This document shows positions 38,095 through 52,375 of a stretch of DNA of 64,000 nucleotides, in pieces; the first letter of the stretch is position 1; each line of letters begins with the position of its first letter. Below the pieces are notes generated by a model. It worked only from the letters and a program-made list of their open reading frames with translations. It had not been told where the DNA came from and did not search any database. A program made the translations under genes and the position numbers. The DNA comes from Rhodosorus marinus CCMP1338 (Eukaryota > Plantae > Rhodophyta), in NCBI GenBank assembly GCA_029953675.1, contig JAMWBK010000007.1, forward strand, positions 1,488,001 to 1,552,000. Direction: 5' to 3'.

Positions 38095-39071
38095 CCTCTA
38101 TAAACCTCAGCAGATACTCAGCACCAAAAAAAACAACGAAAAAAGTCAAAAGAGAAGAGAAAAACCCTTCCCTCACATACAGAAACACCCGCTTTTTTCC
38201 ATAAGAAAAACAACATCCACAAACCTCAACACACACACCAGAGATTCCTCTCCTATATCATTTTTCGCATCTGATCCACTTTCCTGTCCATACCTCCCTA
38301 ACCATCCCCACCAGGCCAAACCAGACCAGACCAACGCCAGACCATACTATATGCCCCAGTCCAATCCTCTTCATCCCCAGAGAAGAGTTACCAATCCATA
38401 TCAGTTGACAAGAAACGCCCCCTACAAGAAAACAGTATAAAAAAAAAAAAACGACCGGTGCGTCCCTTTTCTAAGCTTGACATAAAACTCCTCAGCCTCC
38501 TGGCCTAAAAATAACGAAAAACCACTATGTTTCGAAATCAAGGTCTATACACTAAATATAGAATATTGTACTATATATTTATCTTAAAATTGAATCTAGA
38601 TCTTAATATAGACTAGAAGATCATAAAATATGGAATTATTCTAATCTAGAAAAAATTACAAATTTAGAAAATTATGTACTTGATAATATGAAATAATCTA
38701 ATTATTAGGTTTACTCACTTTAGATTAAGAATTTGTTTCTAGTTTTAGTGAGATTTGTTTTGTCACTCTCTCTCATCTGGAATCTGTTGACTGACGCAGT
38801 ACTCTGGTAAGGAGTTGGTTACTTAACGAAGAAAGGAGCTGTTGGAGGTCGGGAGCAGGTCTGAGAGTAGTGTTGGTTAGATATGTATACTTTTGAAGGG
38901 TTTATGGTATACTGGAAGTTGAGTTAAGTATGGTCGGTCCATGAGGTGTGATGGACCGATTCATGGTGGAGGAGTAGGAGGTCTGTTTCGATGTTTTAGG
39001 GGGAGGATTCTCGTTTCGCTTTTTTAGCTTGCTTTTTTTTGGCAGCGAGGAATGCGACGCAGACTTGGACA

Positions 39072-40718
39072 ATGAAATACTCTGCGGTATGGGCGAAGAC
39101 GCTTTCAGGGCTGCTTACGGTTGTGGCTTGCACGCTCTCATTTCATGAGTCGGGAATGCATCTTAAGCACTTTAGGCGCCCTGAGGTTTGTGATTTTCAC
39201 ACCAGTCGGCTGGGCTTCCTTGGATTGCTGTTTGGCAGAATTTGAGCTAAGGCGTGCCCTGCTCCTCTGATGATCGCTCTCTTGTGACTCGAATGATTGT
39301 TTTGTCATCAGATGCAAGTCAGAATTGTCCGAATACTGGGAATGGTTCCTGTGTACTCGATTACGTCCTGGCTTTCGCTTGTTTCAACTACGAATGAGTT
39401 CAGGCTAACATTGGACTTGATTAGAGATCTTTATGAGGCGTTCGTTATATACAACTTTATTTCTCTCTTGATTCGAATGGGAGGCGGTTGGAGGAGGACA
39501 ATATTTTATCTCGAGGTAATCCCTTAGGCCTTACCAGACTTGCTCCGGAAAAACCGCGGAGAAAAGCTTCTGTGCAGGAGCGTTCGAGCTTTCACTGAAT
39601 GGATTTTTTCTGTACCCAAATGAATTGACCTCAGGATCAACCGAGGGCTCCGCACTTCTTCCCGCTGAAATTGTGCCTTCCCCCGGTGCAGCTCGGTACG
39701 CAGTTGCGGGGCTTCAACTGCATTGTACGCATCTTTGGGAAAAGACCTCGTTCTAAGCAGTTCCGACCGTTTTCGGTTTCCAGGTCAGACCTTTTTGATA
39801 CTGACGAGGGCAGCTGCGCTGCAATTCGTGCTCATCAAGCCCCTTAACGGTCTGCTGCTTTTGATGGCGCACCAGAAAGGAGGCCTGTTCGGAGGGTTCT
39901 TATCAGTCAGCGCTGTAAAAAGAATTGCTGCAATCACTGACAACCTGTCTATTTCGGTAAGGAGCTGGTTGATTAATAGTTTAATCTTGTTCCAAGTTGT
40001 TGCCTTGTTTGATTCATGATCTCCGAAATCATGTACCTAACAACGCACTTGCGTTTTACAGGCGGCCCTGTACAGTCTAGTTATGCTGCATACGGCTCTC
40101 CACAATCTTCTCGAGAAGTACCATCCGCTGCCAAAGTTTTGGGCAGTCAAGATGGTCGTATTTTTCTCCTTCTGGCAGGGAGTCGTACTAAATACGATGG
40201 TTAAGGTTGGCTTTATTACTGACGTCGAGGGCTTTCCCGCGTCTGCTCAGGTATCGCCTGGCCCGTTCATTCACCTGTTCTCTGCATTTTCCATGAAAAC
40301 TGACCCTGCTCGGTGGGGATGTATCTGTAGGTATCGGGTATCCAGGACGTTCTAATTTGCCTGGAGATGGTGGTTGCGGCGGTCTGCCATACGGTCGTCT
40401 TTTCCTGGCGTGAGTGGCAGGATGTGGATGATTTATATGATGAAGCCGAAAAGAAACCGTTGATTGCGTAAGTACTGATTCATTCACCGCAGTGCTGAGC
40501 CATGGTTTGTTGGGTGATTCATCCGTTCAGTGTCTGATCGAAATGTTTGTTGTCTTTCCGATAACCCTACAACGAGCAGCAAGATCCTGAAGGTTGTTGA
40601 CTTTCGTGATTTCCTAACCGACTGGAGAGACACCGTCTCCGGTGATGGCTACGAGTACGAGATGCGACAAAATGAGCCGAGGAACATGTATAGTAACAAG
40701 TCGTACACTAATATCTGA
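39072..40718 (+). CDS. TMEM184: TMEM184/OST-alpha (DUF300) transporter, multi-exon
   Basis: IVRILGMVPVYSITSWLSL, IRDLYEAFVIYNF, LQFVLIKP, KFWAVKMVVFFSFWQG, IQDVLICLEM. Start uncertain (an upstream exon near 38941 is possible). Confidence 0.9.
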
Positions 40719-41340
40719 CGTGCTTAACAGAAACAAGTCAATGAACTATTTACGTGGAATGGTCCGTGCCCAGACCCTCCAGAAGAGGACCTACTTGGTT
40801 TTCACGTTCGTAGGCAAGGTCAGGTTGGTCCGGCCTATAGCTTCATTACTCCGAGCATCACCCTGGTTAGTGGGACCAGTGCTTCCGGGTTCGGGTTTGC
40901 GTTGTCGGATCTGCTACTTCTGGGTCGTCGCATGAGGAGCACGAGGGCCACCGCCAATAGCTCTACCTACACTCCACCAAGACTGGACTGTTCCTGAACT
41001 AGGCAACATGCTTGGGATTTCGCATCCGTGGCGCAGGTGTCTCGATCGACGCCGAGAAGGTCGCGCCGTCGAATCGATTGAACATCCAACTTTCAAATGC
41101 GATCACGGGGATTTGTTCTTGTTTCTTGCTCGGTGATCAGTTAGCCGCTCAGAGTTGGCCTGTCTGTGATGCAGAAACAGCTTTGAAGCAAACCACACCC
41201 GCGACGTTTCGGCGATTATCCGTATCGGGTGTGGAGCCCCAGGGAAGATTGCAGAGTGAATGCCCTGAGCGTGTCTTAGTTGAAATCCAAGTTTTCGGAA
41301 GCACCTCGGATAAAATCAATCGCATCCAGGGCTTCTGACA

Positions 41341-41652
41341 TATCGACGCCTAAAACAGTTCCACAGGCCCCGCGCTCACAATCTCCCCAGTCCAGGCGGC
41401 TCATTAGCTTCACGACCTGACCACTGGAGTCATAAAAATCTCATCATGATGCTCACGGCACATCAATGCCTACCAGCTCCACGAGGACCACGTCACACTC
41501 TCCACGTCCCGGGGGGGCTCAATGGCCTTAACGTCTGCCAGGTAAAAGTCGAAGATCTCTTCCTGCGGCTTTTTTTTCAGATCAATGCCTACCAGTTCCA
41601 CGAGGCCAACGAACACAATGTCCCTCGTGTCCCTGTCCTGGGGGCTCAACGG
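41341..41652. repeat. Three degenerate ~65-72-bp GC-rich units spaced about 120 bp apart
   Basis: Shared core atc(a/g)a(t/c)gccta..cag(t/c)tccac..gg...caca.t.tcc...gtcc.gg.ggctca at about 41341, 41461 and 41580. Confidence 0.8.
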
Positions 41653-41829
41653 TTTCACCTCTGTGTCAGGTTAACTCAAATGAAATCTCAAGGTGTCATG
41701 GTCAATCGACAAGCAGCGTGCTTGAGGAGTAAAGGAGGTGGGTGGGGAAACTGAGCTCGTGGAGGAGAAATTGAACTGGGAGACTGTGGACAGAACTGAA
41801 TTCCCGTCCTTAAGCTTCTCGTATTGGTG

Positions 41830-42837
41830 ATGGTAGGTTTTGTTGGTTTGATTCCAGTTGGATTGGAACGTCCCATGAGAGTGAGGAGGAGATGTGAGAC
41901 TGAGGATGCATTGAGAGTGAGGTAAGGTCGATGAACTTTTTCGATTATTGGCCTCTAGGCTGATGACGCTTGTTTGTTGTTGGTCAGGTATTCGACGTTT
42001 GCGGAGCTAGCGGAGGCGATTCAGAGTATTCGTGATGATCCGCTGGCTTCGGATGGGGGGAAAATTGTACATTACAGGGGCAACCCTAGGGCGAAGCTTA
42101 TGGTGATGGATCGATCAGGAAGATGACGGAGACGAGGCTCGAGCCAAGAGCTGGGTTTTAAATGCCAATATCCTCTATTCTTTTATCTTTGTCTAGGTTG
42201 TCGGTGAGGGCCCTGGAGAGCAGGAAGACATTGAGGGAAAGCCGTTTGTGGGGAGGTCGGGAAAACTGCTTGACAGAATTCTTCGCTCCGTTGAGCTTGA
42301 CCCTGAGGAGGACGTCTACGTGACGAATACGGTGAAGCGGCGGCCGAAGGACAACCGAGACCCAACGGTTTGTTGTAGCCAGATAGAGGTCTCCATGTCC
42401 AAAGCAAACCATATCTGAAACTTCGTTCTTCACGATATTCACAGAGGGATGAAATCGAATGGTACCTTCCTTACCTCAGCGAGGAGGTACGTCTAGTCGA
42501 CCCCCACGTCATCGTATGCTCCGGAAAAGTTGCAATGACAACTGTCCTACCGGAAGTTGACAGTCGAATCTCAAGGGTGTGTTCAAGCTCAGCGATTCAA
42601 CCCCAAGTTCGCTTACGTTCTCGGTTCAGTAAGCTTATCACTCTTCGCTTATTCGATCGCCGGTAGGTTCGTGGACAGTGGTTTAATCGATGGGATAGAC
42701 TGGTTATGCCAGTCTTCCATCCATCTTACTTGCTGCGGAATCCGAGGTGGGAGGATGGTTCACCAAAGGCTTGGACGTGGAAAGACTTTTGCAAGATCAA
42801 AAGGAAACTGAACGAACTCGAAGGCAGCTCTGAGTGA
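41830..42837 (+). CDS. Family-4 uracil-DNA glycosylase, cyanobacterial-like, plastid-targeted, 5 exons
   Basis: Not in the ORF track. MVGFVGL transit peptide, then RGNPRAKLM|VVGEGPGEQEDIEGKPFVGRSGKLLDRIL..DVYVTNTVKRRPKDNRDPT|RDEIEWYLPYLSEEVRLVDP..|VRGQWF..MPVFHPSYLLRNP..GSPK. Confidence 0.9.
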
Positions 42838-43482
42838 CCCCCTGGGAGCTCACTCAGCGACCCGTGGGAACGGCCTTTGGATTCTGCTGCTTAGGATACA
42901 GAAAATTCGTTTTTGTGTTTATTTCTTATTGCGTTCATTCTTATTATTAAATCATGCTGCGAGCGAATGAACCACGTTCGCAACCAAAGTTTCAGTCTCT
43001 ATCATAATATGAACTAGAATAAGACGGACTTATGGTTTCCAACCGGGACTAGTGGGAGGGTCTCAAACTCCCAAATCTTTGGTTCCTCTGCTATATTCAC
43101 TAGTATGTACAGAGACCCTCTAGCCCGCAATCTTCTCCACTAAGAGCCGTAACCTTCTCGTGTGTCTCTTATCTCCACACTTGACTGCGGAACAAGGAAC
43201 TCACCAGACATAAACACAGACAAGGTCAAAAAAAAAAAAAAACAGCAAAGCAAATTGGCACATGGACATTCACACACAGACATAGTGTGGACAACAGAAA
43301 CACATCACATAAACACAACAACCCAGGAAGATAACTACAGGAATTCACAATGCCTCAACGGTTCTTCCACTCTCAGTTACTATTCACAAAGGCAAAGGCC
43401 CAACGCCCCAACTCAACCGAGTTCGCAACTACTGCTGGCAACCCCCGGGCAAACAGAGCAGGTCAGCTTGCTGCTAGGCAGC

Positions 43483-43797
43483 CTAGACAGCGTGCTGAGA
43501 AGTCTCTGCGGTGACCAAGTCCAGCAACGTTGCAGCCCTCAGAAGCACCTCAAACCTCTGCTTCATGAGTTTCCTCGCCAGTTCTTCAGACAGACCGTTG
43601 ACCGGTTTTCGGTTTGCCTTCTTGTCAATCTTCTTCGTTACCCGAATAGTCTCCGCTGGTGGGGGATACCCCAACAGCTTACCCTTCTTCCATCTCACTC
43701 CGCACGCATTACAAAGAGTCTTCGGCCCATGAGGCCCAGCCCTCCACAGCGGCGTCTCCGTTCTCGCACACACCGTACACTTCCTACCCGTCGACAT
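43483..43797 (-). CDS. Small GATA zinc-finger transcription factor
   Basis: CTVC-x18-CNAC with [26 protein letters not shown]. Confidence 0.92.
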
Positions 43798-49251: not shown

Positions 49252-51872
49252 AATTGCTCTGATTTGGCTTCCCGGTTTTCTTACGTTGATACGAGTTAAC
49301 TTGTTTGTGCCTCTCCGCAGTTCCGAAGGAGGAGACCTCAGGACGAGGTGTCTTCTCAATTTTCTCCGGTGAGCGCGAAGTAGAACCGCACAAACTCTTC
49401 TGCAATTCTTGCATTTCTCATGACGCTGTATACGGTTGGATCTCATAGGTTCCACTGGACATAGTCAAGAATCAAATGACCTGGTCCCTGTCCGAAACTG
49501 GGTGGAAAGGGCGTTCGCAGATAATGCGTCTCCAGCCGATAAGGTTGGAGAGGTCAGCAGCGACGGGAGTGTTGGCACAAGCCCCGCCCCACCATTGATC
49601 TAATTCGAAATGTGTATAGTTAATACTGTCATCGTCCCCCGGATTTGTAATTCGCGGGAGTAGACACTGCTCATGAACTGGAGAACAACTCTACTCCCGA
49701 TGCTGGACTTGCTGGCTTAGCTACTGGAGATCAAGCTGCTTTCAGCCTTGTATGGGAGCCTCGCATTTTTCTTCCAACTCAGCCACCTGGAGTTTGAAAT
49801 GCGCTGATCGTTGAGTTGGCATTTTGCTCTCCCGACTCCTTCCGGAAGAGGTAGGGTTGACAGCTGTTCCGCGATTCATACACGTCTCCTTCCGTTCGCT
49901 CGTTTCTAATGAAAAATCCGCTCTCAGGAATACTAGCCTGCGGCTCAAGATTAGCTACGGTGGAAGATTGGAAGAGATACAATCTCGTGAGCGATCAACG
50001 GAGTCCTCTGGTTGCGGAAATCCAATCACAGGTTCAAATGCAAATGTGCTAAAACCATGACTACTAGCAGAAATTGAACGAATACATCTGCCGCGAGGAG
50101 TTGCTTTCATTTGAAACGATTGCCCGGGTCGAAGTTGCCGTTTCCCCTGACTTGAAACTCACGAAGCATTGATTATTGCAGAGCTCCTTACGGGTGGCTT
50201 TCTGGTGACGACATCTCCACCGCCCTTGGCATCTGTGGAGTCTTGATATGGAACACAACAAAACAAACTAGTTCAACTTGTTTTCAGGCGAGCAGACCGT
50301 CTCTACCATATCTTTCAGACCACCCAGTGGGTTGGTGAAGATGGGTCTAGCAGTGGTTGCGGCTTGATCCTGGGGAGATATGCAATTGCTTGATGAAGGC
50401 TTGAGGGACAAGTGGTCTCGCCATATCCGGACGAGCAAAAGCCACCCTCTGCTCGAATACGACTAGTGCACCAAGAACCAAAACAAGGTTGTAATGGAAT
50501 CCGCGAATTTTGGGCAAGATTCCCATACTTCATTTTCTTTCTATATTTAAAAGAAAGCAATAAAAATGGATTTCATCTTTTCATAAAATATTCATGGAAC
50601 TGTTCCCCGATGAACCGAACTCAAGCGATTTAATTAAGATCATCCAATGAAATTTGTATTCCAATGAAATCGCCTAAAACAATTCCAATTTTTCAACTCA
50701 ATTTGGAAAGTTTTTGTAATCTAAACCCGAAAACGAGAATTGCGTGGATGAAATAGATTGGAAATAATTTCTTATTGGCTATTTGCACAGTGTCGTAACG
50801 GCACATGTCTTGGAATGGATGGAAAGTCTTGTATCGTAGTGAATAGCCACCAATCTATGGAGGTCCAGCTCGGGGTTTGAAACGAACTCGCGGTGGCAAA
50901 CAGAGCAATTTGCTCTGTTACAAGACAAGAATTAGCTGCAGCCTCAGATACTGGTGTGCAGCCAGAGGCCGGAGCTCCATGTCGAAGTTTGTTCAAGGGC
51001 CACAAACGACATAAGGAACGAACATCAGCGTCAAGAGTCTGAATTATCCCCTGTTGGTCGGGGAAGCAGGACAATGCCAAGCCGGCAACGAACTCCTCCT
51101 CCCCTCTTCTACTTGTTGAAAAGATCTGAAAAGAATCAATAGTCAAAAAGTTTGAATGCGTCAGTCCGTTGGTGATTTTCTTGACCGTCCTGCTGGTGAA
51201 TCTACGAATCGGATGGTTCAGAGAGAAAAATGCATTGAGTTTTGAAAGGCTGACGGGGTTTGTTTTTCAAGGGACGATGAAGCAGTGAATCCATAACAAA
51301 GGACGCAGGCACTGGAAAACTTATTGGACAGGTTCGCATAGATGCCTTTCCGAAGAATTCGCATGGCCGCTGGCCGTCCGAGAACGAAGTGAGAGGCGGT
51401 AGCTTCAGTTCGTATCTTAGATATGGAGGCTGTGAGGGAACGGGATCAACGCGGCCGTTTTTGTTTAACGGACCAGAACATCGGCCACACGTTCTGAAAA
51501 AAAGGCGTGGGCGACTTCAGATACTGATCTGGACGACCGGCCAATCTTGGGGAGACCCTAGAATGGAATGCGACTTCCGCATTCCGTTTTGAGTTACCCA
51601 AAACTCCTCTGCATTGTTCCGAGAGCAGATGTAACATAGGGTATCGCATGCCGCATGTGTGATGAGATACAGTGACAAATGGACTTCCTCTGGTCTGAGG
51701 CAGCGTAGAAGGAATGCACAGTTGAAAGACTACATAAGAGTCGATCAATTCAGATGCAGATGTCAGGACTTCTCCCAGAGGCTCGGAAGAGCAAGGCAGT
51801 TACTCGGATAGCAAGGGGCAAAAGCAAGGAAACGTTTTTACGTCGTTGTATTATCAGCCCGCTCGATCGAAA

Positions 51873-52184
51873 ATGGCATTCGTTTCTGGAAGCAGCTTTG
51901 TGGGACAGAGGAATGGAGGAAAGCATCAGATATGTAAACGCGATGTGACCTGCGCTACAGTGAAGATGATGGCGAAGAAAGAAAGCACCAAGGAGGAGGA
52001 GAACATCATCGTCACTCTGGATGATCTGAAGCGGGATGAGAAGCGAAGTGGATGGACCTTCCACAGCGAAAACTGGAATGGGAGGATCGCAATGCTGGGG
52101 ATGATCATTGCCATCGGAACCGAGCAGATCAATCCCGCTCATCCCACTATTGCCCAGCAGATCGGTGCTCTCATCGGACAGTAA
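51873..52184 (+). CDS. One-helix LHC-like protein (HLIP/OHP), copy 1
   Basis: MAFVSG transit peptide, GWTFHSENWNGRIAMLGMIIAIGTEQ (ExxNxR chlorophyll-binding motif), intronless. Confidence 0.9.
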   Translation: MAFVSGSSFVGQRNGGKHQICKRDVTCATVKMMAKKESTKEEENIIVTLDDLKRDEKRSGWTFHSENWNGRIAMLGMIIAIGTEQINPAHPTIAQQIGALIGQ

Positions 52185-52375
52185 TGCAAAAATGCTCTGG
52201 TGAGCTACACGGAGGCTCTGTATATATAGTACAATCAGTACACACTCACAGATCGTGAAGCTTACACTACGGAATTTGCACTGAATAGATTTAAACTCAT
52301 GAAAAAATTACTCTGTTCGTAAATGAAAAGGATTTGTTTCTAGTTATATACAACGGGACTCAAGGAATGACAACC

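Follow-up and report, generated by a model that had tools for sequence, protein, structure and literature searches.

Uracil-DNA glycosylases (UDGs) of families 4 and 5 are routinely described as prokaryotic Fe-S enzymes, and the purpose of the cluster in DNA glycosylases is still debated. The UDG families are defined by two motifs, A and B (PMC4787834), and reviews describe family 4 as FeS-containing enzymes that were first found in extremophiles (PMC8307549). The uracil pocket of family 4 is built from the motif-A backbone together with three residues, which in the Thermus thermophilus (Tth) enzyme are E47, which excludes thymine, N80, and H155 (PMC9796141). Because Cys-to-Ser mutants of the Pyrococcus and Archaeoglobus family-4 enzymes lose only ~40% of their activity and keep ~60%, the cluster appears to be structural rather than catalytic (PMC5295032). 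Here we describe a UDG gene from a unicellular red alga, Rhodosorus marinus CCMP1338, located in a 64,000-nucleotide (nt) stretch of its genome (hereafter the window: assembly GCA_029953675.1, contig JAMWBK010000007.1, positions 1,488,001-1,552,000, forward strand). By the motif definition and by a curated hidden Markov model its product is a family-4 UDG, yet it is without the [4Fe-4S] hallmark and belongs to an Fe-S-free subclade rather than being a canonical member of the family. In our judgement, this nuclear gene probably encodes a monofunctional family-4 (UDGa-type) enzyme of that large subclade, targeted to an organelle, most likely the plastid.

Family membership, fold and the cluster ligand positions

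The 226-aa product matched the Pfam UDG domain (PF03167) with E = 4.8e-34 and passed the cut-off of the NCBIfam model for UDG family 4 (TIGR00758; 150.7 bits, cut-off 125.3). Membership in the archaeal equivalog or in UdgX was rejected, since both models scored below their cut-offs (NF040953, 143.4 bits vs 250; TIGR03914, 123.9 bits vs 189.95). In UniProt, the algal proteins are given the automatic annotation 'Type-4 uracil-DNA glycosylase', and NCBI calls the Rhodosorus protein hypothetical.

By sequence, the closest solved structure is that of Tth UDGA (1ui0; E = 2.3e-43), with Thermotoga TM0511 and Sulfolobus tokodaii UDG4 ranking behind it. An AlphaFold2 model built from a 24-sequence alignment had a mean predicted local distance difference test score (pLDDT) of 89.7, with values >94 for residues 31-223 and an essentially unstructured segment at residues 1-30. 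When this model was used in a Foldseek search, 1ui1 and 1ui0 were recovered first, with target-normalised template-modelling (TM) scores of 0.94 and 0.92, respectively, and a root-mean-square deviation of 1.3 Å for 1ui1; TM0511 and S. tokodaii UDG4 came next. The Rhodosorus enzyme is 44% identical to UDGA of T. thermophilus HB8 over ~187 residues, has the same motifs A and B and, like it, would be a small, single-domain, monofunctional glycosylase.

Motif A (GEGPG, residues 72-76) lies near the first beta-strand, with G72, E73, P75, and G76 invariant across our alignments, and motif B reads HPSYLLR (residues 188-194). The pocket residues are also in place: in the MAFFT alignments E79, N113, and H188, which correspond to Tth E47, N80, and H155, are all invariant. 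F86, which we take to be the uracil-stacking residue, falls in a conserved PFVG segment and is nearly invariant. Both the curated model and the fold, together with GEGPG and HPSYLLR, bear out the original prediction of a family-4 UDG with intact catalytic motifs.

That prediction had further claimed that the enzyme carries no Cys at any of the four ligand positions, and this too was confirmed. The segments AEAIQSIRDDPL, TVKRRPKDNR, and DEIEWYLPYL, on which the claim was based, are all present in the product and contain no Cys. We read the ligand columns from HMMER alignments to TM0511/1vk2 and TthUDGA/1ui0 as well as from three independent MAFFT alignments. The first Cys of C-x2-C is replaced by I45, the second by D48, the Cys of VKCRP by R117, and the Cys ~16 residues later by Y133. 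Alignments to TM0511, TthUDGA, and the cyanobacterial enzymes placed no other Cys at these positions; the three Cys residues that the protein does have (C22, C151, and C212) fall outside the ligand columns and are not conserved. In the 24-sequence alignments, which span bacteria and algae, D48 and R117 are the same in every sequence, and Y133 in nearly all. Thus, the Thermus enzyme has a four-Cys [4Fe-4S] cluster, whereas the Rhodosorus enzyme has I45, D48, R117, and Y133 in its place and differs additionally in having a putative targeting presequence and introns.

Loss of two to four ligands was also seen in other lineages of family 4. The ligand columns read F-C-W-C in Alphaproteobacteria (L027, L041, L043, L067, L070, and L072), I-C-F-Y in Pelagibacteraceae (L022), A-L-H-S in Balneolia (L061), and A-D-F-S or P-D/E/N-F/Y-S in Trueperaceae (L058, P0331-P0450). 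Several lineages have different replacements, and loss of the Fe-S cluster is therefore recurrent and independent in family 4. A Cys-less Trueperaceae query, used to look for the biochemically active Deinococcus DR1751, returned only proteins from Trueperaceae and Deinococcales metagenome-assembled genomes (MAGs), and the DR1751 papers are silent on the cluster.

Distribution, targeting and proposed mode of action

Each of the 120 best matches in a collection of 5.8 billion proteins lacked all four Cys and had the same [L/M/I]-D-R-[Y/F] tetrad, with L, M, or I at position 1, D in 119/120, R in 120/120, and Y or F in 119/120. The majority are ~200-aa bacterial proteins without an N-terminal extension, and all bacterial members with a named source are Chloroflexota (Anaerolineae, Ardenticatenales, and Promineifilaceae). 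At E <= 1e-3 the family had 28,220 members; the best 150 representatives of these, clustered at 50% identity, included ~35 with xDRY and 80 with CCCC in the ligand columns.

The named eukaryotic members are the red algae Rhodosorus, Purpureofilum apyrenoidigerum, and Bangiopsis sp., and ochrophytes, which have red-derived plastids (Nannochloropsis/Microchloropsis, Rhizochromulina, Tribonema, Heterococcus, and Pylaiella). Many further representatives are extended at the N-terminus by 55-270 residues and are algal in appearance. The eukaryotic distribution of the Cys-less UDG follows the red plastid, and the premise that family-4 UDGs are prokaryotic does not hold, given how widespread they are in red algae and ochrophytes. 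The Rhodosorus gene is unexceptional within its widespread subclade, and it is the subclade itself that deserves attention. Full-text literature searches, with subscription literature outside their scope, found no paper on a Cys-less family-4 clade or on an algal or plastid family-4 UDG. The caveat attached to the original prediction, that Cys-less versions might turn out to be widespread and already described, is therefore correct in its first half, as the 120 nearest proteins show, and found no support in its second.

Two unusual architectures were observed among the relatives. Three red-alga-like proteins (P0129, P0133, and P0140) have N-terminal extensions of 170-240 aa that share the segment (T)EEQ.AFIFQRSPYH.YR.RRYG, which has no Pfam match, and they are also without the GSPK segment after motif B; the shared segment may represent an additional module that certain red-algal orthologues carry. 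In a 286-aa metagenome protein from ENA (P0281), an N-terminus resembling the C-terminal end of RNase HII is joined to a Cys-less UDG domain. Either two DNA-repair functions are genuinely fused, or arranged as neighbouring genes, or the protein is an artefact of gene calling.

Relative to its bacterial homologues, the Rhodosorus UDG has ~20 extra N-terminal residues; other algal members have 20-260, and the bacteria have none. The presequence is predicted to be disordered (pLDDT < 50 at residues 1-3 and 11-27). Previous work has shown that stromal targeting in rhodophytes and glaucophytes uses a Phe-based motif at the extreme N-terminus, and that algae with red secondary plastids have kept this motif, which there comes behind the signal peptide (PMC7038456, PMC2222254). 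By eye, we matched Phe4 in six red-algal or red-alga-like orthologues (MVGF, MIGF, MEAF, (M)ACF, MAGF, and MDAF): the N-termini are MVGFV in Rhodosorus, MIGFV in another R. marinus strain, MEAFV in Bangiopsis, MACFA in Purpureofilum (an internal start), and MAGFVAP and MDAFVTP in two red-alga-like representatives. In ochrophyte orthologues, an aromatic residue comes after a hydrophobic stretch that resembles a signal peptide (LCLA-WQAP in Pylaiella, TAA-WSLQ in Nannochloropsis, LIVA-FQLD in P0136). The shape of the N-terminus fits the red-algal plastid type, which makes the transit peptide proposed in the original prediction plausible. From these sequence features we consider organellar targeting of some kind quite likely, with the plastid, on balance, the favoured destination.

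The same enzyme might instead work in mitochondria, or in both organelles. Its presequence is short and rich in Arg, at 7 of 31 residues, and an alphaproteobacterial group is sister to the Cys-less clade in our larger tree, described below. The short length, together with five acidic residues, also tells against a plastid destination, so that mitochondrial or dual targeting is possible. However, Phe4 is kept across the red-algal and red-alga-like orthologues, and it is by such an N-terminal F motif that rhodophytes separate plastid from mitochondrial precursors (PMC7038456). Furthermore, the distribution of the gene tracks the plastid, being red algae plus algae with red-derived plastids, and the ochrophyte orthologues look bipartite. 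We therefore regard a mitochondrial or dual role as unlikely.

If, as we prefer, the protein is a plastid-targeted, Fe-S-free family-4 UDG, its presequence (~30 residues, with Phe4) would direct plastid import and would then be removed. Judging from residue conservation, the remaining ~195-residue alpha/beta domain would act as a monofunctional uracil-DNA glycosylase, like TthUDGA, and, as a family-4 enzyme, would be expected to work on both ssDNA and dsDNA. Once uracil had been flipped into the pocket, F86 would stack against it, N113 would read it, E79 would exclude thymine, and H188 would stabilise the leaving uracil; the abasic site would be handed to base excision repair. At the usual site of the cluster, a metal-free staple, consisting of a probable D48-R117 salt bridge and the packing of I45 and Y133, may hold the N-terminal helix against the VK-R-RP strand and the helix that comes next. 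Such a salt bridge is suggested because D48 and R117 do not vary, and Y133 hardly varies, across bacteria and algae.

Could the protein be a degenerate or non-catalytic relative, either a pseudo-enzyme or a UdgX-like binder of uracil-DNA? The hallmark cofactor is absent, and mutation of one cluster Cys inactivates UdgX (PMC4787834). UdgX (Mycobacterium smegmatis, 6ail and others) also has a family-4-like fold, with target-normalised Foldseek TM scores of 0.72-0.84 to our model and a sequence E of ~1e-21. However, UdgX has the motif GEQPG, a DNA-cross-linking KRRIH loop, and an Fe-S cluster (PMC4787834), and the Rhodosorus enzyme has none of the three: motif A is GEGPG, its alignment to TthUDGA shows no KRRIH-type insertion, and, as stated above, it falls below the UdgX cut-off. 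In addition, the pocket and catalytic residues are invariant in the 24-sequence alignments, the gene is expressed and is conserved from bacteria to algae, the AlphaFold2 model is confident, and the Cys-to-Ser mutants of other family-4 enzymes are still ~60% active. A non-catalytic protein is improbable, and activity without an Fe-S cluster is plausible.

Ancestry of the Cys-less subclade

We scanned one genome per GTDB species, and the following comparisons hold among the matches listed. Chloroflexota were at the top (L001-L007, all [L/M]DRY), with phmmer scores of 189-201 bits vs 143-179 bits for the cyanobacteria, which came next. The cyanobacterial homologues read C-C-C-C in 11/11 cases (Synechococcus, Microcoleus, Cuspidothrix, Rivularia, Phormidesmis, Chamaesiphon, Nodularia, and others). 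Identity to the Rhodosorus UDG reached 60% for bacterial proteins of the Chloroflexota type and was 42-50% for cyanobacteria.

The closest bacterial counterparts are therefore the Cys-less UDGs of Chloroflexota, from MAGs of Anaerolineae, Ardenticatenales, and Promineifilaceae (P0018, P0036, L001-L007), which share 50-60% identity and the [L/M]-D-R-Y tetrad with the algal enzyme and fall in the same clade. Unlike it, they have no N-terminal extension and no introns; many read VFR[RL]PP, and some have a 5-residue insertion (PPGEGGK) after the R. Only automatic annotation was found for these proteins, and biochemical characterisation was found for none of them. The cyanobacterial enzymes that were sampled (Microcoleus, Rivularia, Nodularia, Synechococcus, and others) share the family and its motifs with the Rhodosorus enzyme, but they keep C-x2-C, KCRPP, and the fourth Cys, and branch outside the Cys-less clade.

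A neighbour-joining tree of 199 sequences with 100 bootstraps recovered the Cys-less clade in 99/100 replicates, with no cyanobacterium inside it, and the red algae (Rhodosorus, Purpureofilum, and Bangiopsis) as monophyletic in 96/100. No replicate (0/100) grouped the eukaryotes with the cyanobacteria. In a second neighbour-joining tree, of 402 sequences and without bootstrap values, the xDR[Y/F] clade comprised 214 tips, divided into one mainly bacterial half and one half consisting almost wholly of eukaryote-like proteins with long N-terminal extensions. Because the algal and Chloroflexota-type enzymes share both the tetrad and the 99% clade, and the sampled cyanobacteria keep their Cys, the Cys-free state appears to be older than the entry of the gene into eukaryotes, and thus inherited, and the donor appears not to have been the cyanobacterial endosymbiont.

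This differs from the history offered in the original prediction, in which a gene from the cyanobacterial endosymbiont was relocated to the nucleus and its Cys were then lost inside the eukaryote, as an adaptation to oxygen in the plastid. The plastid-type presequence is in keeping with such a history, as is the existence of cyanobacterial family-4 UDGs at 42-50% identity. However, the identical D-R-Y is found in Chloroflexota genomes and in the 120 nearest proteins, which are mostly bacterial, and endosymbiotic transfer would place cyanobacteria closest or as sister, whereas Chloroflexota-type proteins were closer by both bits and identity. The oxygen argument fails as well because oxygenic cyanobacteria retain the cluster whereas Anaerolineae-type bacteria do not. 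An endosymbiotic origin followed by loss in the alga is consequently very improbable. Other plastid-targeted proteins are likewise known to have ancestors outside the cyanobacteria (PMC3518814).

We suggest instead that the gene of the red-algal ancestor goes back to a Chloroflexota-like lineage in which the Cys had already gone, either because it was acquired horizontally or because the two shared an ancestor, and that the gene would then have passed to ochrophytes with the red plastid. Several aspects of the data weigh against this account. The trees are neighbour-joining only, the branching of eukaryotes and bacteria within the Cys-less clade is poorly resolved, and the Nannochloropsis group lies near the base of the bacterial half of the 402-sequence tree on very short branches; the direction and number of transfers are therefore uncertain. 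That tree also puts a Cys-poor alphaproteobacterial group as sister to the Cys-less clade, a placement without bootstrap support that may represent long-branch attraction. Finally, the sampling of cyanobacteria is incomplete, being that of the matches listed.

Taken at its widest, our proposal is that the whole Chloroflexota, red-algal, and ochrophyte subclade has a metal-free Asp-Arg-Tyr(-Leu) staple and is fully active, and that its algal branch arose by Chloroflexota-like transfer, spread with the red plastid, and serves uracil base excision repair in plastids. We put this forward tentatively, as a combination of claims whose chance of being right in full falls a little short of even.

Gene structure, genomic setting and meaning

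The UDG gene, whose ATG begins at 41830 and whose TGA ends at 42837, has five exons and four introns, all GT-AG (Table 1), in agreement with the four introns of the original prediction, and the spliced coding sequence is 681 nt long. Over its whole length, the product matches the GenBank hypothetical protein NDN08_004627 of R. marinus with 100% identity. A complete open reading frame in an MMETSP transcript from another R. marinus strain, which starts with MIGFVGLIPVG, is 93% identical to it, and because of this match the splicing is backed at the cDNA level. Complete transcripts begin with M[VI]GFV and support the predicted splicing. The possibility of a hidden upstream exon encoding C-x2-C was rejected: none was present in the three-frame translation of 40500-41990, the N-terminal helix aligns to bacterial homologues without gaps, and the complete transcripts have the start just given.

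Another R. marinus MMETSP transcript (P0011) reads through intron 3, giving NRDPTVCGSQTEV, which parallels the read-through of the window, NRDPTVCCSQIEV. Together with the complete transcripts, this means that intron 3 is known both spliced and retained. The retention in P0011 yields a truncated 157-aa product without motif B, and it could be either splicing noise or regulated retention.

The gene is expressed, and it is a bona fide nuclear gene of R. marinus. Bacterial contamination, or a mis-assembled bacterial gene, would fit the bacterial identity of the nearest non-algal relatives (up to 60% identity) but is hardly conceivable for a gene with four GT-AG introns, one of them caught both spliced and retained, on a 2.21-Mb contig with eukaryotic neighbours (GATA, RING/PHD, Ost-alpha) and with orthologues in three other red-algal transcriptomes; introns, context, expression, and conservation rule out contamination or a pseudogene.

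Table 1. Parts of the Rhodosorus UDG gene and features around it, in window positions
Feature	Position	Strand	Size or type	Content
Exon 1	41830..41921	+		residues 1-30 and two bases of codon 31; presequence MVGFVGLIPVGLERPMRVRRRCETEDALRV, putative plastid transit peptide with Phe4
Intron 1	41922..41987	+	66 nt, GT-AG
Exon 2	41988..42102	+		residues 31-69, N-terminal helix; I45 (42028-42030) and D48 (42037-42039) in place of C-x2-C
Intron 2	42103..42196	+	94 nt, GT-AG
Exon 3	42197..42367	+		residues 70-126; motif A GEGPG (42203-42217); E79, F86, N113 (42326-42328); VKRRP with R117 (42338-42340) in place of the third Cys ligand
Intron 3	42368..42444	+	77 nt, GT-AG	kept in one isoform from the transcriptome of another strain
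Exon 4	42445..42576	+		residues 127-170; Y133 (42463-42465) in place of the fourth Cys ligand
Intron 4	42577..42666	+	90 nt, GT-AG
Exon 5	42667..42837	+		residues 171-226 and TGA; motif B HPSYLLR (42718-42738), with catalytic His188
Ost-alpha/Solute_trans_a gene	~39070-40720 (exon at 40083-40355)	+	338 aa	PF03619 membrane transporter; product annotated in GenBank
Direct repeat	41459-41492 / 41578-41611 (also 41356-41387 / 41593-41624)		34 nt	copies 88% identical, 119 nt apart
A14 run	~43229-43242			between the UDG and GATA genes
GATA-type zinc-finger gene	43483-43797	-	104 aa, single exon	PF00320, E = 1.8e-15
Called gene (L081 20044-20355)	~51870-52190		103 aa	faint Chloroa_b-bind Pfam match

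The UDG gene sits between the upstream Ost-alpha-type transporter gene and the GATA zinc-finger gene; RING/PHD and PAP2 genes lie farther off. The GATA gene is convergent with the UDG gene, its stop lying ~650 nt from the UDG stop. The direct repeat 5' of the gene is ~220-370 nt before the ATG, in the putative promoter, and resembles part of a ~119-bp tandem duplication. The called gene ~9 kb downstream might encode a small plastid protein of the light-harvesting-complex-like or early light-induced protein type.

The subclade to which the Rhodosorus gene belongs is a clade of >200 sequence clusters, from bacteria and algae, that is without the cluster and has one conserved replacement for it, and this makes the role of the cluster testable by comparing the two forms. 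If our reading is true, these enzymes would serve as a naturally Fe-S-free control in asking what DNA glycosylases gain from the cluster, be it structure or redox or DNA-charge signalling. The Rhodosorus protein and its orthologues would also provide a candidate uracil-repair enzyme for plastids of the red lineage, of non-cyanobacterial origin, which would fit the mosaic ancestry of plastid proteomes.

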